Shown in pieces: positions 19,104 through 36,913 of a stretch of DNA of 64,000 bases. The stretch spans positions 2,728,001-2,792,000 of the forward strand of contig OZ218955.1 of NCBI GenBank assembly GCA_965112735.1, written 5' to 3'. The DNA is from Phaeosaccion multiseriatum (taxonomy: Eukaryota > Protista > Ochrophyta, other classes). Every line of letters begins with the position of its first letter. Position 1 is the stretch's first letter. Made by a program: the position numbers and the translations under genes. The notes below the pieces were generated by a model. The model worked only from the letters and a program-made list of their open reading frames with translations. It was not told the origin of the DNA and did no database searches.

Positions 19104-20048
19104 CTTCTCTCGAAGCTCTCTCTCTCTCACCCCCCAACCACCCAACCACACACATCCAACACCCAACTACTGTACCCACCCCTTAGATCGCATGGGCAGG
19201 CGTACCACTCGCACCCCCTCTTTGCCCCCTACCGCTTCCACGATGTGTCTGATGGGCGCCTGAGCCGCGGCACCAGCAGGGGGGGCGGCAAGGGGGCTTC
19301 CTGCAGCAACAGGCAGGAGGTCATGTACATCGTTCGGCTGCTCAGGTGAGTGTTGGCAGGGGTGAGAGGGGAGGAGAGGAGTGGGAGGGGAGGAGGGGAG
19401 TGGGAGGGGAGGAGGGGAGTGGGAGGGGAGGAGGGGAGTGGGAGGGGAGTGGGAGGGGAGGAGAGGAGTGGGAGGGGAGGAGGGGAGTGAGAGGGGAGGA
19501 GAGGAGTGGGAGGGGAGGAGGGGAGTGTAGGAAAGGAAGTGGGAGCCGACTTTGAGCTTGGCTTGTATGTTGCAGTGGCGCTGCTCTCAAGCTTTTCGTG
19601 CTGGCCCTTGTGGCTCCTCTTGCTGTGCCACCAACTGTTGTACCACCAATTGCTGCTGCCGTATCGCCTGAACCCGGCCCATTAACATGCTCTGCTACTG
19701 CCCTTTGCCTGCTCTTTGCCTGCTCTGCGGCTGCGGTATCACTCACTGCCGCAGGGAGCTGCGTGCTTGCTTCCCCAGCGTGGAGCTGCGGCACCGCATC
19801 GGCATCATCGCCCCCTACCGGGCCCAGATCCAGCTGCTCAAGCAGGTTAGTAAGTCATTAAGGCAGTCAGTCGTTAGGGCCGTAGCCCTTGATCAGCCAT
19901 CAGTCCCTTCATGGTGCACGCACACACACGCACACACACACTCACACACACACTCTCTCACACACACACACACTCACTCACACACACACACACACACACA
20001 CGCACACACACACTCATACACACACACACTCACACACACGCGCACGCG

Positions 20049-20096
<48 letters not shown>

Positions 20097-21266
20097 CATA
20101 CGCACACACACACAAAGCCGAAAGCCGCGCACGCCCGTAGCATGTATAACCGTCTGCTTGTATCCCTCTCCATTGCATATCACCAACCTGTGTATCTCCA
20201 ACCTGTGTATCACCAACCTGTGTATCACCAACTGCTTGCTGCAGGAGGTGCCTGCTGCACTGGGTCTGAGCGGTGCCGCGGCGCGAGAGCTCGACATCTC
20301 CACTGTGGACGGCTTCCAAGGGTGTGAGAAGGACATTATCGTCTTCTCCTGCGTCAGGGCTCCGGAGGAGGGGCACGGGCAGGGGCAGGCAGGAGGAGGA
20401 GCTGGGGCAGTTGGTGATACGGGAGTAGCAGGAGGCGGGGGGCTCCCGCGGGAGGGCGGCATCGGCTTCCTCGCTGACTGGAGGTGGGTGGGAGGGTGGG
20501 TGGGTGGGGAGGGCAGAGGCAGAGAGCCCACAACACACACACACACACTCCATCTCTCTGTCTCACACACGCACAGTCGCACAACACACATGGACAGATA
20601 CGCCCTGCCACGCCGCTTCACTTCACTTGACTTCACGCGCCTTTGGACCCCTTCCGCCTCCTCTGACCTCCCTTCCCCCTCCTCCCCTCTCGCCCCCCCC
20701 CCCACCCCCTTTAACCCTCTTTTCCCTCCCCCTTTAGGAGGCTGAATGTGGCCATCACCCGTGCCAAGTACGCGTGTTGGATCGTCGGGCACGCCGACAC
20801 TCTGCGACGAGGGGACAGCGGAGAGTGGAGAGACCTGCTGAAGGACTGCGAGGGCAGAGGCTGCCTTGTACAGGGAGGCCTGGGGGGGCTGGGGCAGTGG
20901 ACGCACAGGGGCATGGGCATGGGCGGCTCCCATCGTCACCACCACCAGCAGCAGCAGCAGCAGCAGCAGCAGGAGCAGCAGCAGCAGCAGTACGGACGGC
21001 GAGGACGACAGCAGCAGCAGCAACAGCGGCAGCAGCGGCAGCAGTCGTATGGGCAGCAGCCGCGCAAAGGAAAGCCGCGGAAGCCGAAGCTCAAGGCCGA
21101 CCACCGCGGGGGTGGTGGCCCAGGGGGGCAGCACCCAGGGGGGCGGAACCCAAGGGGGGCTCCTGGGCACGGCCTGAGAGCAGGGAGTGTCGCCACCCCC
21201 TCACCGCCCCCTCCTCCACCCCCTCCTCCCCCATCTCCTCCGCCACAGCCATCGCCACAGCCATAG
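9072..21266 (+). CDS. SETX: Sen1/senataxin-like (UPF1-family, SF1B) RNA/DNA helicase with a long disordered N-terminus
   Basis: About 16 exons (9072-11520, 11776-12173, 12401-13153, 13782-14165, 14549-14693, ~14929-15020, 15438-15564, 15928-16136, 16522-16639, 16952-17106, 18467-18592, 18837-18904, 19187-19345, 19755-19845, 20245-20483, 20738-21266). Motifs occur in order: LLQGPPGTGK|T, VLVVAPSNAAVDE, VVVDEAAQATEP, LVGDPNQ|LPAT, SLFQRL, LDTQYRMHPE, IGIIAPYRAQ, TVDGFQGCEKDIIVFSCVR, IGFLADWRRLNVAITRAK. The FETVHEYQE-VFFPLLLRET segment is typical of the Sen1/MAA3 subfamily. The symbol is a family-level call. Confidence 0.88.
11911..12022 (+). repeat. 12-bp coding minisatellite (AGTGTTGCTAGC), ~9 copies, encoding (SVAS)n in exon 2 of the helicase
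   Basis: Perfect tandem copies, in frame with the exon. Confidence 0.9.
13488..13670. repeat. 22-bp minisatellite (TTGGCTTGCTGCCCTCCCCTCT), ~8 copies, intronic
   Basis: Unit starts at 13488, 13510, 13532, 13554 and onward. Confidence 0.92.
15160..15425. repeat. Degenerate (CCCATAC/CCCTATA)n heptamer tract, intronic
   Basis: This is the reverse complement of the 17107-18260 satellite, in more degenerate form. Confidence 0.8.
17107..18260. repeat. ~1.15-kb G-rich heptamer satellite (GGGGTAT/AGGGTAT)n, intronic
   Basis: It begins at the GT donor after the LVGDPNQ exon and carries recurring higher-order blocks (AGTGTGTTGGGTAT). Confidence 0.95.
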
Positions 21267-26500: not shown

Positions 26501-27093
26501 ATCAGCAGAGAGGAGGCTGGGCGCTCAAGCTTCCACCCCCCGCGATGGCCACGAGGAGGAGGAGATGTTCATGGGCAGGAAGTGCAAGGATGCGAGAAGC
26601 GAGGAAGTCGCGCACCGCATCTCGCCCTGCCGCCGTTGCTCCGGGACAGGAAGGGCAAGAGGAGGAGCAGCAACCCAGCCGCCTTCATGCAGCCAGGAGG
26701 AGCAAGGCGCTCCGTGTGGGGGATGAGGTCCAGCAGCTGCTGCTGACCATTGAGGGACGAGAAGTGTCGCGCATGGGCTCTGAGAGGCGGGAGGGCTGCG
26801 CTTTCGGATAGCTTCGAATGCGAAGGGTGCTCTTGAGTTCGGGAGGGCTTGGAGAGGAACAGCGCGACACACACACAACTACGCTCGCTTGGGTGTAGAG
26901 TGAGTGGGATGTGGCACTGTGGGCGCGTGTTTACTACAGGGCGGTGACGATGGACACACACATGCAACAATTTACGCTCCTGCTTCAATTAATGCAATAC
27001 GAAGGACCGTTTGAGGGAAGCAAGAAAAAGTTTGCGCTGCTGCGTGTGGTGTAGCCATCTCCCACCCCACCCCGCCTGATCGCTTGTGCACTC

Positions 27094-30000
27094 TTACCAC
27101 ATCATTTCGCTCTGCTGTGGAACCCGCATGCCACCCTCTTTGCTCTCTTTGCATTCCTCCATCGTTGTCATCTCTACCCCTCCTGCTGCCTCACTTCGAT
27201 GCTCGCCTTCCTCCCCTGCCGCCCAGCCTTGACGGCCTTCCTCCTCCACCGCGTCGCTCTCCTCCCCTTTGAAGCGCCACTCCTCCTCTGCGTACACCCC
27301 AAACAAGATAAAGTTCATCAGCATGAGCGCCAGCAGCGTCCACCCCGCCACCCCCACATCTCTCACTTCGTCATGCATTTGGAAGCATACGTCGCGCGTG
27401 AGGTCTGCGTAGAAGGTCCCCACAAAGCCGCACATGGTGTAGGCCGGGGCGTCGAGGGCACGGTCGTTCACCCTCCACAGCGAAGCGCTCAGATCGGTCA
27501 CAGTGCTCTCCGTCGAGGCCGCGAGGAAGGTCAGTAAGGCACGCGAGTTGTGTCGCTGCTGTGCCACCTCTTCCTGCTCCTCCTCAAACCGACTCAAGTT
27601 GCCATGGAAGAGCACGAGCTCATCCCGGATGGCATCCAACGCCTCGACCTGTGACGCGTTGAGAGCCGATTCCGAGGGCCGAGTCTCGTTTTGGTAGGCC
27701 GAAACCGCCGACAGCGAGGCGTTGAGGCTGAATCCCTCGGCCAGGTCCAGAGCCAGGAAGCGATCGAGTCGCGTGTATGTGTCCCTCGCACCCGATACAC
27801 TTCCCAGGCCATCGGCGAGGGCTCCACCGACACCTCGTAAGATGTCGTCGATGGGGAGGATAAAGGACGTCAGATTGAGGGCCTGCTCCAGCCCCAGGAT
27901 GCCCACTGCTTGCATCGTCGCGTGGCAGGGGTGGGGGGGTCCGCGTGAGTGCGTGGTCGGCCCACGAGGGGGTGAGTAGGAGAAGGCGGAGGGGTGCAGG
28001 AGGGGCATGCACCAGAGGAATGAGGGAGGGTGGCGTGCGTGAGTGCGTGCGTGAGTGCGTGAGTCAGTGAGAGAGGCAAGGGAGCAAGCTGTATAGGTGA
28101 GTAACGCACCGAAGTTGTTGGTGGAGTTGGGGCTTGTGCCGACCGGGCACTCCAAGATGGCGATGATTGACTCTCCGAGGTCGTTGGAGACGACGCCGTT
28201 CAGCGTGTAGGTCTGGGGGTGGGGGCAAGGATGGCAGGGGGTGTGGAGCGAGCTTGATGGATCGGCAGGAGGGGCCAAGGCATCTTGATCAGTTCCAATC
28301 ATGCTAGCGCGAGAACAAGGTTCTCCAATAAAACCCAGTCGCTCACTCACCCACGCACCTGCCCTTGGAAGGTGGCCAGCACGACTTGTTGGTTGACCGC
28401 ACATACGTCGCCAATGACCTTGTAGGCCCCCAGAAATAGGCCCCCCAGGAGCGCGTTGAGCCCCTGGAACGCGAAGAGGTAGGCCATACCGCCGGCCTGG
28501 CAGGAGCAGCGCCAGCACCCCCTGTGGGACCGCGACGGTCGCCCTTCTTTTTCTTTTCGTTCTTCTTGTAGTTGTTGTTGTTCTTCTTCTTCTTCTCCAC
28601 CTTGCTGTTGTTCTTCCTCTTGTCTGATGTCGATGCCGGCCTGCGGTTCCCTCTGCGGCTTCCCGAGACGCCGCTCCTCGCTGCTGCTGGCCCTTCCGCG
28701 GCAGAGAAACACCACCCCACACAGAAAGAGTACGAGGGACGGCAGAAAGACTACCACCCCGGTGACGGCCGCCACGAGGGACCAGTAGTCCTGGCCAGTC
28801 TCGTATCCATCGCGCAGCTCCGTCTCGCGGAAGTGCGTGACCTTGTCGGTGAAGGGCCCCAGATCGTCCTCCACAACGCCGTCCAGAAAGGCCGTGATGC
28901 GCTCCAGCTGGGCATCAATCTCGTCCATGTCGAGCACTTGCCGCACTGCCATCAGCCACAGCTTCAAGCTCAGACTCATCGTCTTTGCGCGGCGTCTTAC
29001 CTTCTTGCTTAAGTGTTCGGCGTCTGCAAAAGATTCGTCAGTGACGTTTAGGGCGGTGGCCATGCCCACTCCTCCTTCTGCTCCTGATGAGTCAGTCACG
29101 TTGGGCAGAGACGCCGCTTCGGCGATGGACGAGATGCGGGCGGCACTGCTGCTCAGACTGCGAGACGTTGTCTTGGCCTGCTTCAGGGTGTCAGCGGTGT
29201 GGCTCAGGTTGCCTGCCGCCCAATCAAGGCTGGCGACCGTATCATCCAAGAAGATCACTATCTCGCCAATTGCAGAGCCGGCAATGTCGCTTAGAGAATA
29301 CACCCACTCCCCAACACTTGCTCCATCGCATGTCCGCTCATGGTGCCCCTCTTGCTTGCTGTTGCTGCTGTTGCCGCGGCCATTGCTGCACAGCATGGAG
29401 TTGACGTTCTGCAATAGTTCGTCCGTACCTCGGTAAGCCTTGGTCTGGGGAGCGCATTGGGCGCGGTTGAGGCGGCACAGTGGGCAGAGAGGGCACACAA
29501 GGGGGGTGACGGTTGTGAGCTGAGCGGGAGAGATGTGTACGCCCCTCATCACACCCTCGACCATCCTCTGAGCGAACTCCAGCCAATAGTAGCGACGAGT
29601 ACAGCCTCACGTCATTCCTTACGATGACTGCGTGCGAAGCGTGGACGTTATAGTATGCCACCGAAGCGGCAGCGAGATATCCCACAAAGAGCAGCACAGA
29701 TGTGCACAGGAAGATGCGTCTCTCTCGAACCGCCACCCGGCGCGCCGACCCAACCTCCTGCTCCTTGTTCGGACTCAGGAGAGCACTCTTAGAGAGCGCT
29801 CGTGAGCGCGATGTTCTCATCTGCTCCGCTGCGGCTAGCGCATTTCCGTCCTTGTACTTCTCTTCCTTCTTCTCTTCCTTTCCCTCCTCCGCTTCACCCT
29901 CCCCGTCCTCCTCCTCCTCCTCTTCCACCTCCTCCGCCTGGCGGCGCTTCCTTCGGTGGTCGCGGCGGTGGAAGAGGAATAGCCCAATGCACATGACCAC

Positions 30001-30102
30001 CCCAATAGCGAGCGCGAGTGCAAGACCTACAAATGCCGTCGCCTTCAGTACGTGCATAGCGTACGGCTTGAAGTCGGAGACCTCGTACTCGGTAATGTCC
30101 AT
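27094..30102 (-). CDS. Prominin/Tweety-like pentaspan membrane glycoprotein
   Basis: About 4 exons. There are five hydrophobic segments (FVGLALALAIGVVMCIGLFLF; IFLCTSVLLFVGYLAAASVAYY; WSLVAAVTGVVVFLPSLVLFLCGVVFLC; MAYLFAFQGLNALLGGLFLGAY followed by GDVC; GWTLLALMLMNFILFGVY) and two long helical loops with NxS/T sites. The prominin-like CGFVGTFY...DVC precedes the last TM. The start codon is uncertain (MDITE at 30102 assumed). Confidence 0.65.
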
Positions 30103-30731
30103 GACCGGAAAGCACGCATTTGTCCTCGGGACGCCAATCAGGTAAAGTACCCACAGAGCGAATGGAGGCTGTACACCCACGAGGGAAGCAAGTAGGCGAG
30201 GAGAAGAAAGGTGTCACTCATCGAGCCATTACGGGGCGCAATCGGCGAAGCGCAATACCTAATAGTCATTGATACCTTGCGTGCAGTCATCTTCGAATCG
30301 GAGTTGGGTGTGGTACACATGACTCGGAGGACTCGCTGTCACGAGGGAAGCGAGCAGGGCAGAGAAAACCCCGTAGCTACCATCTGTGATTTCTCGCCTC
30401 TGCTTCAACTCTCCCTTTTCCGTTTCTGTACGTGGAGCTGGGAGTGATCCGAGTGTCAAGGCCAGTTCTATACCGAGCAAAATGTATACGGTGTGCACGC
30501 TAGACGATGAAGCCTGTGCTAGCGTCGCCCCGAATGGCGCCTTCTCCCCTCCCCTGCATGAGGATCGGCACGAGGATACCCAGGGGGCGAGTGAGTCGAG
30601 AGAGACGAGTGAGTTGAGGGAGCTGAGGGAACGAGGGTCGTCAGCGACGGAGGGGGAAAGGAAGGTACTACTACCCTTGCTTCATCTGCAACGGGTTCAG
30701 CTAGCTAGGCAATTCACCGCTTGAGTCATAC

Positions 30732-33700
30732 CTATTGCGCCGCAGCTGTGTCGGTGGCGCCTCCCCCAATGGGCCTGCCAGCCTGCTGCTGTGGTGGCTG
30801 CTCCTGTTGGGGCTGCTCCTCTGTGTATGTCAAGGGCACGGGCTCGAAGGCACCGCCTGAAGGAGGACCGCGGACGAGTGAGTCGGACGACATAGGAGAG
30901 GATGGCAGTGAATGGAGGAGAAGGGAAAAATGGAAGGTAGAGGTGGTAAAGAAGAAAGAAGGGGGGTGGCGGCAGCTGTGGCACGCGTCTCTTACCCCTT
31001 GCTCCACTTCATGTCCGTCCTTCCTTCCCGCGCTCGCTTCCCCACCCACAGCCGACGAGGGCTCCTACGGATGCACCTACCCCCGCCCCGACGATGAAGG
31101 TGAGCAATCTCAGCAGTCATGGGCAGTCTGCTTTGCCCGTCGACCTCATGTGATCGGCCCGTTTCAGCTCTACTCTCCCCGCTAAGCCTCACGCGTCTCT
31201 TACCCCTTGCTCCACTTCATTTCCGTCCTCTTTTCTCTTGTTCGCTTCCCCACCCACAGCCCACGAGGGCTCCTACGGATGCACCTACCCCCGCCCCGAC
31301 GATGAAGGTGAGCCATCTCAGCAGTCAGGGGCCGTGTGCTGTGCCCGTCGAGCTGGTGTGTACGAGCCGTCTCTTTCCTACACTCTCTACTAAGCCTCGC
31401 TCTCCTGCTACCCCACATGCATTCCCGTGCTCGCTCCTTCACTCACAGCCCACGAGAGCTCCTACAGACGCTCCTACCCCCGCTCCTACGACCAAGCCCG
31501 TCTGGACAGCGGCACCTACGCCCGCCCCCACCATGAAGGTAAGCAATCTCAGCAGTCATGGGCAGTCCGCCGTGCCCGTCGACCTCATGTGATCGGCCCG
31601 TTTGAGCTCTACGCTTCCCGCTAAGCCTCGCGTTTCCCTTACCCCTTGCTCCACTTCATTTCGGTCCTTCCTTCCCGCGCTCACTTCCCCACCCACAGCC
31701 CACGAAAGCTCCTACGGATGCACCTACCCCCGCCCCGACGATGAAGGTAAGCCATCTCAGCAGTCAGGGGCCGTGTGCTGTGCCCGTCGAGCTGGTGTGT
31801 ACGAGCCGTCTCTGTCCTACACTCTCTACTAAGCGTCGCTCTCCTGCTACCCCACATGCATTCCCGTGCTCGCTCCTTCACTCACAGCCCACGAGGGCTC
31901 CTACAGACGCCCCTACCCCCGCTCCTACGACTAAGCCCGTCTGGACAGCGGCACCTACGCCCGCCCCCACCATGAAGGTACGCAATCTCATCAGTCATGG
32001 GCAGTCCGCCGTGCCCGTCGACCTCATGGGGATTGGCCCGTTTGAGCTCTACTCTCCCCGCTAAGCCTCACGCGTCTCTTACCCCTTGCTCCACTTCATT
32101 TCCGTCCTCTTTTCTCTTGTTCGCTTCCCCACCCACAGCCCACGAGGGCTCCTACGGATGCACCTACCCCCGCCCCGACGATGAAGGTGAGCCATCTCAG
32201 CAGTCAGGGGCCGTGTGCTGTGCCCGTCGAGCTGGTGTGTACGAGCCGTCTCTTTCCTACACTCTCTACTAAGCCTCGCTCTCCTGCTACCCCACATGCA
32301 TTCCCGTGCTCGCTCCTTCACTCACAGCCCACGAGAGCTCCTACAGACGCTCCTACCCCCGCTCCTACGACCAAGCCCGTCTGGACAGCGGCACCTACGC
32401 CCGCCCCCACCATGAAGGTAAGCAATCTTAGCAGTCATGGGCAGTCCGCCGTGCCCGTCGACCTCGTGTGATCGGCCCGTTTGAGCTCTACGCTCCCCGC
32501 TAAGCCTAGGCATTAGGCATAGCGGGGAGCGTAGAGCTCAAACGGGCCGATCACATGAGGTCGACGGGCACGGCGGACTGCCCATGACGGCTAAGATTGC
32601 TTACCTTCACGGTGGGGGCGGGCGTAGGTGCGGCTGTCCAGACGGGCTTGGTCGTAGGAGCGGGGGTAGGTGCGTCTGTAGGAGCTCTCGTGGGCTGTGA
32701 GTGAAGGAGCGAGCACGGGAATGCATGTGGGGTAGCAGGAGAGCGAGGCTTAGTAGAGAGTGTAGGAAAGAGACGGCTCGTACACACCAGCTCGACGGGC
32801 ACAGCAGACTGCCCCTGACTGCTGAGATGGCTTACCTTCATCGTCGGGGCGGGGGTAGGTGCATCCGTAGGAGCCCTCGTGGGCTGTGGGTGGGGAAGCG
32901 AGCACGGGAAGGAAGGACGGACATGAAGTGGAGCAAGGGGGACGAGACGCGTGAGCCTCAGCGGGGAGCGTAGAGCTCAAACGGGACGATCACATGAGCT
33001 CAACGGGCAAAGCAGACTGCCCATGATTGCTGAGATTGCTTACCTTCATGGTGGGGGCGGGCGTAGGTGCGGCTGTCCAGACTGGCTTGGTCGTAGGAGC
33101 GGGGGTAGGTGCGTCCGTAGGAGCCCTCGTGGGCTGTGGGTGGGGAAGCGAACAAGAGAAAAGAGGACGGAAATGAAGTGGAGCAAGGGTTAAGAGACGC
33201 GTGCTACGGATGCACCTACCCCCGCCCCGACGATGAAGGTAAGCCATCTCAGCAGTCAGGGGCCGGGTGCTGTGCCCGTCGAGCTGGTGTGTACGAGGCG
33301 TCTCTTTCCTACACTCTCTACTAAGCCTCGCTCTCCTGCTACCCCACATGCATTCCCGTGCTCGCTCCTTCACTCACAGCCCACGAGGGCTCCTACGGAC
33401 GCACCTACCCCCGCTCCTACGACCAAGCCGGTCTGGACAGCGGCACCTACGCCCGCCCCCACCATGAAGGTAAGCAATCTCAGCAGTCATGGGCAGTCCG
33501 CCGTGCCCGTCGACCTCATGTGATCGGCCCGTTCGAGCTCTACGCTCCCCGCTAAGCCTAGGAGCAAGAGGCAGAGCGATGACCCAAGAAATTGAGCCAA
33601 AGACATGCAACCATGGCTTCACACTGCCGCAGAAGGCACACTCACCCCCTCGTGCCTACAGCTCTGCGCAGCGGCTTGCTCGAAAGTGCTCCAGCTCAGC

Positions 33701-34119
33701 GTCGCCCCCGTGCATGGGCGCTGAGCCTGCTCACCGTGGAAAGGGGCCGCAGAGGCCGGGGGTGCTGCTTGGGTGTACGTGGGGGGGGGGGCACGGTCGA
33801 ATGCCGCCTCGAAGAGGAGGTCAAACGGGTGGCAGGAGGTCGGCCAAGTCCACATGCTGTAGATTCTCCTCAATGCGCTGCTCAAGCTGCTGGATGGACA
33901 GATGAATGGTCGCAGGCGGAGATTCGAATAGATGCTCCATGGACACCAGTCAATCCCGGCGCTCTCCTGAGTCCGAACGCAGAGGTGGAAGAGGAATAGC
34001 CCAATGCACATGACCACCCCAATAGCGAGCGCGAGTGCAAGGCCTGCAAATGCCGTAGCCTTCAGTACGCGCATAGCGTACGGCTTGAAGTCAGAGACCT
34101 CGTACTCGGTAATGTCCAT
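30732..34119 (-). CDS. Putative chimeric gene: duplicated 5' end of the prominin-like gene fused in frame to the last two exons of the neighbouring membrane-protein paralog
   Basis: One open frame runs from MDITEYEVSDFKPY...IGLFLFH through to PPTYTQAAPPASAAPFH. It is followed by a donor at 33734, an acceptor at 30857 and a terminal exon GAFEPVPLTYTEEQPQQ...AAAQ* (30856-30732). It could be a pseudogene. Confidence 0.45.
30982..33558. repeat. Array of Pro/Thr-repeat mini-exon cassettes (~439-bp unit), with an inverted central block
   Basis: Forward exons at 31052-31099, 31260-31307, 31449-31538, 31699-31746, 31888-31977, 32139-32186, 32328-32417 and 33380-33469. Inverted exons at 32694-32605, 32883-32836 and 33133-33044. 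Exons are 48 nt (PTRAPTDAPTPAPTMK) or 90 nt (…PTTKPVWTAAPTPAPTMK), each flanked by CAG| and |GT. Two conserved intron types (~141 and ~160 nt) alternate. Confidence 0.92.
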
Positions 34120-34551
34120 GACTGGAAAGCACGCATTTGTCCTCGGGACGCCAATCAGGTAGAGTGCCCACAGAACGAATGGAGGCTGTACAGCCACGAG
34201 AGAAGCAAGTAGGTGAGGAGAAGAAAGGTGTCACTCATCGAGCCACTACGGGGCGCAATCGGCGAATACACTATTAATTGATTGTTGCATACTGTCATTT
34301 TCGAATCGGAGTTGGGTGTGGTACATATTACTCGGAGGACTCGCAGTCACGAGGGAAGCGAGCCGGGGAAGTCAGACTTCTTTTGGTGATATGACGCCAT
34401 CTGTGACTCGTATAGCTGTTTTTGCCCCCCACGGATGTAGGCCCGAGTGTCCGGCAAGGCCTGTCCCCCACCAAGCGGAAGCTACACCGTGTGAACGGAC
34501 GGAGCACTCTCTCCCCCCTGCATGAGGATCGGCACGAGAATTCACAGAGGG

Positions 34552-34975
34552 CGAGTGAGTCGAGTGAGTCGAGTGAGTCGAGTGAGTCGAGTGAGTGGAG
34601 TGAGTCGAGTGAGTCGAGTGAGTCAAGTGAGTCGAGTGAGTCGAGTGAGTCGAGTGAGTGGAGTGAGTCGAGTGAGTCGAGTGAGTCGAGTGAGTCGAGT
34701 GAGTCGAGTGAGTCGAGTGAGTGGAGTGAGTCGAGTGAGTGGAGTGAGTCGAGTGAGTCGAGTGAGGGAGGGGAGTGAGTCGAGTGAGTCGAGTGAGTCG
34801 AGTGAGTCGAGTGAGTCGAGAGAGTCGAGTGAGTCGAGTGAGTCGAGTGAGTCGAGTGAGTCGAGTGAGCGGAGTGAGTGGAGTGAGTGGAGTGAGTGGA
34901 GTGAGTGGAGTGAGTGGAGTGAGTCGAGTGAGTCGAGTGAGTCGAGTGAGTCGAGTGAGTCGAGTGAGTCGAGCG
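34552..34975. repeat. 9-bp minisatellite (GAGTGAGTC/GAGTGAGTG)n, ~45 copies
   Basis: Directly visible in the intergenic region. Confidence 0.95.
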
Positions 34976-35043
34976 AGCGAGGGCCGTCAGCGACGGAGGG
35001 AAAACGGGAGGTGCTGCTCTTGCTCGGTTTGCGACGGACGCAG

Positions 35044-36913
35044 CTACCTAGGAATATGTAACCACGTGAGCCCTACCGGTAGCGACACAGCTGCGTCAGT
35101 GGTGCCTCCCCCGCTGGGCTTGCTGGCCACCTCCCCCTCCTGCCGCGGCTGCTGCTGTTGGGGCTGCTGCTGCATGTATGTCAAGGGCACGGGCTCCGAG
35201 GTGCCGCCTGAAGGAGGACCGCGGACGAGAGAGGCGAGCGAGAGAGGAGAGGGGGATGGCAGTGAGTGGAGTACAGAAGAAAAGAAACAAGATCTTCGTG
35301 CAGGACCGAGAGGCAGAGCGAGAATCAAAGCGATCGAGCGAGACATCGGCACGTGGAGCTTCGCACCGCCGCAGAAAGGCGAGCTGGCCCCTCGTACGCC
35401 CACAGCTACAAAGTATCACGACTCGGCTTGGTCGAGTACCTCGGCTCCGTGCACGGGTGCTGAGCCTGCTCACCGTGGAAAGGGGCCGCAGAGGCCGGGG
35501 GTGCTGCTTGGGTGTACGTGGGGAAAGGGGCGGGGGCGGTGGCCGGCGTCGTCCAGAAGGCCAAACGCAGCTCGTCTGGCTCGGCTCGAGCTGCCACCGC
35601 AGCCGTTGCCGAGCATAGGGCGGCGGAGACGGCGGCGAGAGCCTGCATGACGACGGCCCACGTGTAGTAGCTGTGGGGTGGAGAGGGGCATCGAGGAGAA
35701 GAATGGAGGGAAGGGCAGCGCATCCGGGGAGAGGGCAGCTGAGCTGTTGCAGCTTGCGGCGAATGGGAGAACTATTTGACCATTGTTGCGCGGTACACTC
35801 ACTCGCTCTTGATGTGGTAATCGCTTGCGCCGAAGGCGAGCATGAAGGAAAAGGCCAGGACGTTGAGGAAGGAGGCGCAGGAGCATGATGAGGCCATCGC
35901 TGCGAAGCTGGATGGCAGCGAACGGACGGTGGGCGATACGGGGGGCAGCAGTGCGGACCGAGCAAGATGCGCGCAGCCAGCACCAGCCGAGTCGAAGGCC
36001 GAGGCAGGCAGGCAAGCAGCGAGGGCAAGAAGAAAGACGAAAGGACGTGAGCTGAGTATCACCCCTCACGCGGGGCGGCCGACGGGAGAGGGAGAGAAGA
36101 GTGGCGGGGAGTTACGTACCTCGATCGCGTCCTGATGCCTCCGCACAAGACCGGGGAGATGCCCAAATTGGCCTGTGAGGGAAGGAGGGAAGGAGGGATG
36201 GGTGCTCGCACACTGATTTGTGGAGCCTACCCAAGAAAAAAGTCACAATGACTTACAATGAAGAAGGCGAAGCTGAGCGAGTCACCAACGCCAAAGAGGA
36301 TCCGCGCGAGGCCAGATGGAACAGGGACGAGAAAAACGGAAAGGATATCAGAGGTGAGATTCGCAGCGAGAGACCCTCAGCAAGTCGAAGGAACTGCTTC
36401 AAGTCACAAAATTCCCCTCCTTCCCTACTCCTGCTACTATCTGGTGCTCTGACACTCTTACACTCACATGGACGACCACACGAAGACCCCGAAGACCCAC
36501 ACCTATAGGATCACGTGGGGGAGGGGGGAGGTGTTATCTTAACATGACGCTCAAGTTGCACATTTCGCGCCTTAGAACACTTTTTCCTTCATGCTTCGCC
36601 TCTCCGCTCTCCTTACTTGGGCAAACTCAAAGAAAAGGCACGCAATAGCGGCCCAGTACCACGAGCTCGGGCCTTCCTTCGGCTTGGAGCAGCAGCTTGC
36701 CGTGCGCTCCGGGCGAAGTGGCGGTAGGGGGTCCACAATGTACATAGGCTGCTGCTGCTGCTGCTGAAGCACCTGTCCGGTCTGACCCACGAACTGCGGA
36801 GGCTGCTGGGCGTACTGCAGGGGCTGCTGGACCATTATGGGCTGAGTTGCAAACTGCGGTTGCTGTGCCTGCTGCTGCTGCGGCGGCGGCGGCGATTGCT
36901 GCTGCGTGGACAT
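35044..36913 (-). CDS. Small multi-pass membrane protein with Q/P-rich termini, unknown family
   Basis: Exons 36913-36617, 36172-36120, ~35907-35804, ~35670-35474 and 35207-35044 join with consistent phases. They give hydrophobic segments WYWAAIACLFFEFAQ, FLNVLAFSFMLAFG and WAVVMQALAAVSAALC. One or two further TM-like exons probably lie at 36257-36500. Confidence 0.6.

Follow-up and report, generated by a model that had tools for sequence, protein, structure and literature searches.

Organization of the repeat array and its host gene

The window, i.e., the whole 64,000-nt stretch of Phaeosaccion multiseriatum DNA analyzed, contains an array of Pro/Thr-encoding exon + intron units (30982–33559). 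The array occupies a phase-1 intron with GT-AG ends in a membrane-protein gene on the minus strand; this gene is unrelated to the Pro/Thr genes described below. The occupied intron (30857–33734, minus strand) is 2,878 nt long and was delimited by its GT...AG boundaries and by flanking exons conserved in a tandem paralogue. The 3′ coding exon, reading ...GGAFEPVPLTYTEEQ... and then a stop (30732–30856, minus strand; ORF 30732–31049), is 84% identical to 35137–35252, and the exon upstream of the intron, ...PTYTQAAPPASAAPFHG (33735–33806, minus strand, with an approximate 5′ limit; ORF 33619–34197), is 88% identical to 35441–35545. The homologous intron of the paralogue (35208–35473, minus strand, 266 nt) is empty, and the outer parts of the occupied intron are conserved there as well. 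This pair of an empty intron and an occupied one of about 2.9 kb had already been recognized in the original prediction; its statement that no target-site duplication is evident was confirmed. On the right side of the array, the host sequence picks up exactly at 33560. On the left side, homology to the empty site fades near 30963, which leaves a filler of about 18–20 nt (30964–30981) that aligns neither with the empty site nor with the repeat unit. Positions 30962–30981 match the reverse complement of exon positions 84–103 at 14 of 20 places (ungapped count), and one inverted-repeat pair of the window alignment extends through the filler; it could be a templated filler, or the match could be due to chance.

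The array was mapped with two reference units, a 208-nt unit A whose exon has 48 nt and a 231-nt unit B whose exon has 90 nt; together they tile 30982–33559 completely. The count of eleven intact exons and a partial one made from the letters alone was reproduced by this mapping: the array holds 11 intact exon + intron units and one partial unit, with Pro/Thr exons of 48 or 90 nt. The Pro/Thr frame is open in all 11 complete exons, most of which encode the same 16- or 30-residue peptide. According to Tandem Repeats Finder, 31073–32507 has a period of 439 nt (3.3 copies, score 2595, 93% matches) and 30982–31398 one of 208 nt. The array begins with a forward block of seven units (30982–32507, plus strand): W1 (30982–31189, exon 31052–31099), W2 (31190–31397, exon 31260–31307), W3 (31398–31628, exon 31449–31538), W4 (31629–31836, exon 31699–31746), W5 (31837–32068, exon 31888–31977), W6 (32069–32276, exon 32139–32186) and W7 (32277–32507, exon 32328–32417). 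It is followed by a 7-nt spacer, AGGCATT (32508–32514, read directly), and by an inverted block of three units (32515–33203, minus strand): W8 (32515–32745, exon 32605–32694), W9 (32746–32953, exon 32836–32883) and W10 (32954–33203, exon 33044–33133). The third block is again forward (33204–33559, plus strand) and consists of a partial A unit, W11 (33204–33328), whose first base is unit position 84, within the 48-nt exon, and a B unit, W12 (33329–33559, exon 33380–33469). Units W6–W7 are 99–100% identical to W2–W3 and represent a very recent duplication by which the window array gained two units.

Relative to the host gene, the inverted block has the sense orientation and both forward blocks are antisense, so that most of the array runs antisense to the host. 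It has neither a start nor a stop exon, as had been noted before, and is an ectopic intronic copy. The three sense exons (33044–33133, 32836–32883 and 32605–32694) are open in the host phase and are multiples of three in length; in the phase-1 intron of the host (32605–33133, minus strand) they read as a Ser/Tyr/Arg-rich peptide. Judging from their frame, these exons could be exonized into the host mRNA.

Two features of the surroundings may be mentioned. The tandem host paralogues are separated by a (CGAGTGAGT)n microsatellite with 48 copies (34552–34981), and the corresponding site of the next paralogue has a degenerate remnant (30588–30672). In Pfam searches of 12 long unspliced ORFs of the window (19.7–52.7 kb), only weak transmembrane-type matches were obtained together with a piece of an AAA_12 helicase (E 1.4e-16) in an ORF at 19687–20745 (plus strand), about 10 kb from the array and with no evident link to it.

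Parent Pro/Thr genes

The original prediction called for a genome-wide search with the unit and for its parent gene. The genome itself (67 Mb in 22 contigs) was searched with the unit as a query, and short motif scans were added; the latter recovered a 16-kb array on contig C5 that the whole-genome DNA search had missed. Parents with start and stop exons were found on C9, C4 and C5. Outside the window, unit matches occur at five gene loci with more than 170 exons together. Unit and motif searches located the C9 gene (C9:3224380–3232650), a further C9 locus (C9:3184996–3188202), the C4 locus (C4:~563400–567460) and the first C5 locus (C5:3939678–3948776), while the 16-kb array with about 65 co-oriented 48/90-nt mini-exons (C5:4107450–4123600, hereafter C5b) came from the motif scans.

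The C9 gene is complete, with an ATG, a hydrophobic signal-peptide-like start, and start and stop exons. Its 369-codon Cys-rich first exon continues in frame into the Pro/Thr repeat, which comprises 31–33 co-oriented mini-exon units (33 unit matches; 31 distinct exons), and its last exon encodes a basic tail before the stop. At the C4 locus, the array is flanked by Cys-rich modules on both sides. The structure of these two genes fixes the reading frame and means that the Pro/Thr units are real exons. In the C9 gene, intron 1 apparently begins with GC (GTGAAG/GCACGC, C9:3231538–3231544, minus strand), while all other units have a GT donor.

The window units are 93–99% identical to their best donor-gene units, found for most of them in the C9 gene, for W4 and W9 in C4, and for W1 in C5. 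Far from being hypervariable, the Pro/Thr exons are nearly invariant, and they do not vary faster than the introns: 40 of the 69 exon candidates scanned in C5b encode an identical 16-residue peptide, and in diverged C5 units only the exon and the splice sites still align with unit A. The parent proteins carry repeated Cys-rich modules, roughly C-x-P-D-x-C ... C-V-T-D ... C-R-F-C-G, with Pro/Thr linkers between them (an example on the C9 gene is C9:3231544–3232650, minus strand). This Cys-rich parent domain had no counterpart in Pfam, the ESM Atlas or PDB sequences when the gene models were searched one exon at a time, and the module may represent an undescribed domain. The parent genes form a family encoding secreted Cys-module/Pro-Thr stalk proteins; its members contain as many as about 65 mini-exons and are not matched by Pfam.

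Junctions and the recurring bond

Five of the eight junction sides of the window array fall at one bond, ...GCTAAGCCT/CACGCGTCTC... (the slash marks the bond). By direct reading, the array starts at 30982 with CACGCGTCTC, the forward block ends at 32507 with GCTAAGCCT, the inverted block ends at 33203 with the complement of the CACGCG side, and the whole array ends at 33559 with GCTAAGCCT. The shared junction position first proposed therefore stands for the array start, the end of the forward block and the end of the inverted block, but the array end had been placed one nucleotide too early, at 33558. Likewise, the inverted block does begin with the complement of the forward end, as claimed, but only after the 7-nt spacer and with one mismatch (AGGCATAGC in place of AGGCTTAGC). 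The restart at 33204 is indeed mid-exon. All junction-forming boundaries belong to the same intron type.

Nearly every family intron has a conserved CTAAG/CTGAG motif (e.g., 31181–31189) 54–85 nt upstream of the 3′ splice site. Its AG is the last one ahead of that site, and a pyrimidine-rich AG-free tract comes after it; the motif probably is a distant branch point. Measured from the CTAAG motif, the recurring bond is 4 nt further downstream. This closeness is treated here as chance, which we cannot prove, and it is the main residual oddity of the locus. An RNA- or lariat-mediated origin of the array was ruled out: no junction of a branch point to a 5′ splice site is present, and full introns are retained.

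Sister locus and the number of independent events

A 6.9-kb segment of the window (27074–33945) has an inverted duplicate at C6:2697496–2690870, 66 kb away from the window locus and with its near edge 36 kb before the window start. Megablast aligned the two with 96.1% identity over 5,021 nt and 99.2% over 743 nt. The duplicate contains a second array of mixed orientation (C6:2691257–2693578), in which the left and the right array/flank junctions are letter-for-letter identical to those of the window, and the flanks of the two C6 loci are 97–99% identical. Identical flank junctions within a segmental duplicate mean a single insertion that was copied later. Motif scans and an A-to-B intron scan revealed no loci beyond the five gene loci and the two C6 loci, and mixed orientation is confined to the latter two among the matches listed. 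A single insertion provides no replicate against which a site preference could be judged statistically.

Unit-by-unit matching showed the window array and its sister to be collinear, with the same relative orientation of their units. A flip-flop inversion between the loci was thereby ruled out; what the window has instead is a deletion of about 225 nt. The right part of the segment (33204–33945), which includes the third block, whose first unit is complete in the sister locus, is 99.2% identical to the duplicate vs. 96.1% for the rest, and this higher identity suggests recent gene conversion between the two loci.

Inverted triplication and erosion of the palindrome centers

Compared with the window, the inverted block of the sister locus has one extra unit at its far end, which is truncated. 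This unit is closest to the first forward unit (126/133 identical positions; next best 112/130). Being a copy of the first forward unit, it means that the inverted block mirrors the whole forward block, here called L. The third block is forward and adjoins the right flank. Read together, the two loci point to an ancestral structure L – rc(L) – L, that is, an inverted triplication of one whole-unit insert. By construction, such a structure has a tail-to-tail junction made of the end of L and its complement and a head-to-head junction made of the complement of the start and the start itself. Once the two flank junctions are added, all junction sides coincide with either the start or the end of L. 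One position thus recurs because the inner junctions fall at the ends of L, and the argument that random duplication should not reuse a single breakpoint does not apply to a structure of this kind.

The differences between the loci lie in small indels at the palindrome centers and in unit number rather than in cassette orientation. At the tail-to-tail center, the window has the 7-nt insertion; in the sister locus these 7 nt are absent and one arm has been shortened by 12 nt. At the head-to-head center, the complement of unit position 1 abuts position 84 in the window, where about 225 nt are missing, and the complement of position 67 abuts position 1 in the sister locus, where 66 nt of the inverted arm are missing; the losses thus affect opposite arms. 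These differences fit the erosion of two palindrome centers that would once have been perfect. The arms beside the tail-to-tail center of the window are identical at 421 of 439 positions, and in both loci the arms next to the center are 96% identical, about the divergence between the loci, which makes the triplication at least as old as the segmental duplication. A fold-back at the ACGCGT palindrome (unit positions 2–7) was ruled out, as the junctions keep the complement of position 1.

Proposed origin

The best explanation, to which we assign a probability of roughly two in three, is a one-off, unprogrammed rearrangement in which a whole-unit circle was inserted and then became L – rc(L) – L. 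L, a whole number of units, would have been excised from the exon + intron array of a secreted Pro/Thr-rich Cys-module gene, whose closest present-day representative would be the C9 gene, most simply as a circle released by recombination between repeats. The circle would have been opened at one arbitrary bond, GCTAAGCCT/CACGCG, and inserted by end-joining into the intron of the unrelated membrane-protein gene. L would then have become L – rc(L) – L, with all inner junctions at the ends of L, either by end-to-end joining of copies of the linear fragment or by a hairpin/closed-fork route such as ODIRA; the evidence does not tell these two routes apart. Subsequently, the 6.9-kb segment with the whole structure would have been duplicated in inverted orientation 66 kb away, after which one-sided erosion of the palindrome centers would have proceeded in each copy and unequal crossing-over would have shifted the unit numbers.

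The insert consists of an exact whole number of units, its left end being unit position 1 (30982) and its right end the last unit base (33559); in the donor intron these two bases stand side by side. A random fragment would start and end at the same bond of the donor unit with a chance of about 1 in 200, whereas adjacent ends are the pattern expected of a circle opened once and reinserted. Circles from tandem repeats comprise whole multiples of the unit (PMC2543021), and Sproul et al. (2020, PMC7403614) describe truncated first and last repeats that jointly make one complete monomer as what a reintegrated circle is expected to leave behind. ODIRA yields exactly one head-to-head and one tail-to-tail junction (PMC4689423). 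The original prediction had named unit-length concatemers or circles as an alternative, and it is this alternative that became the best reading, given the whole-unit insert and the inner junctions at its ends. Several points stand against it. Only 2 units, instead of 5, make up the third block, for which at least one extra deletion by unequal crossing-over has to be assumed; the inverted block contains a fused unit (alpha intron + 90-nt exon) vs. two forward units; the 18–20 nt of the left junction are not accounted for; and the recurring bond is close to the probable branch point.

An unlikely competitor is a purely replicative one, in which a simple insert followed by two template switches (a fold-back at the right end and then a return switch) produced a duplication/inverted-triplication/duplication and the junction phases are partly chance. 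The right array end and its flank form a 6-bp palindrome, CCTAGG, exactly at the junction, and the tail-to-tail center likewise reads CCT/AGG, so that fold-back seeding would explain the junction. The left junction has a weak GTG-G-CAC inverted repeat with 3-bp arms, and models of this kind have been published (PMC4689423). However, the return switch would have to hit unit position 1 precisely (a chance of about 1 in 200), the head-to-head junction shows microhomology in neither locus, and the whole number of units in the original insert is not accounted for.

Much less probable is the system favored in the original prediction, in which a nuclease or recombinase cuts introns at GCTAAGCCT/CACGCGTCTC and moves or inverts exon cassettes, thereby diversifying surface glycoproteins. 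The recurrence of one bond at five of the eight junction sides, its position next to a motif conserved in nearly all family introns and the single intron type of the junction-forming boundaries speak for it. Yet there is only one independent event genome-wide, the two diverged copies show no difference in orientation, and at the five gene loci no inverted unit is present among the matches listed (more than 170 exons), all units being co-oriented within each locus. Among the long unspliced ORFs within about 15 kb of the array, Pfam recognized none with a recombinase or transposase domain, in line with the earlier remark that no transposase is evident. Moreover, the Pro/Thr peptides are almost invariant, which leaves nothing to diversify, and the array, ectopic, without start or stop exon and mostly antisense, sits in the intron of an unrelated gene. 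The proposed shuffling or inversion of cassettes was thus not supported. There is an equally slight chance that the GCTAAGCCT/CACGCG bond is a preferred break, enzymatic or structural, that releases unit-length cassettes, the window array being a by-product of active mobilization, or, in a milder form, that the sense cassettes are spliced in frame into the host mRNA.

Capture by a Helitron or another transposon was ruled out, as terminal signatures and a target-site duplication are both absent and the array begins and ends in ordinary intron sequence of the donor. Least credible of all is an assembly artifact in which the palindromes came from a fold-back chimeric read or a collapsed repeat: palindromic junctions are a recognized artifact type of long-read data, but the forward-inverted-forward order is present at two loci that differ by 1–4% in flanks and units as well as by several indels, and the array measures just 2.6 kb inside a 4.1-Mb contig and can be spanned by single long reads.

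Comparison with known systems

The closest parallel to the insertion step is the spread of satellites to new loci via extrachromosomal circles, described for the Rsp-like satellite of Drosophila simulans (Sproul et al., 2020, PMC7403614) and for plant satellite circles (PMC2543021). In common with these, the Phaeosaccion case has a tandem-array donor, no target-site duplication, first and last units that add up to exactly one unit, and a later change in unit number by unequal exchange. Unlike satellites, the window repeat is an exon + intron unit of protein-coding genes that lies in another gene's intron, and its circle is putative.

The triplication resembles the interstitial inverted triplications known as ODIRA in yeast (PMC4689423, PMC10766183), tandem inversion duplication (TID), and human DUP-TRP/INV-DUP (PMC11293582). 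Here, as there, three copies of the same segment are present with the middle one inverted, one junction is head-to-head and one tail-to-tail, and the flanking DNA is kept. Short palindromes at the junction sites may be a further resemblance: CCTAGG lies exactly at the right end and at the tail-to-tail center, and at the left end there is only the GTG-G-CAC repeat with its 3-bp arms. The window copies are only about 1 kb each, in contrast to the kilobases to megabases given in the cited accounts. They are themselves tandem repeats, the presence of a replication origin inside the unit is unlikely, and the centers are already eroded.

Transgene and T-DNA arrays are head-to-head/tail-to-tail concatemers of introduced linear DNA. 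As in those arrays, every junction of the window array corresponds to an end of a single linear fragment, and small fillers as well as one-sided losses occur; the difference is that its fragment is endogenous and of natural origin.

In the brown-algal ROCO-LRR and NB-ARC-TPR genes, arrays with one repeat per exon undergo exon shuffling (Zambounis et al., 2012, PMC3341825; PMC11378527). The parent Pro/Thr genes resemble them, as far as these accounts go, in their symmetric one-repeat mini-exons and homogenized introns and in the related algal lineage. As opposed to the hypervariable exons described there, the Pro/Thr exons are nearly invariant, and the window array lies outside such a gene. Inverted cassettes or a fixed intronic junction are not known for the ROCO-LRR/NB-ARC-TPR systems, at least from the cited accounts.

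Set against these systems, the window array is a neat but ordinary rearrangement. It provides a clean natural algal example of an array of coding exons and introns that seeds a new locus, bears the mark of a circle and then undergoes a small inverted triplication, and its two diverged copies display how palindrome centers erode. It also illustrates that a single reused breakpoint can stem from the ends of one fragment, with no site-specific enzyme required. Overall, three sense, frame-preserving mini-exons with good splice sites in a foreign intron present a possible route of exon gain.
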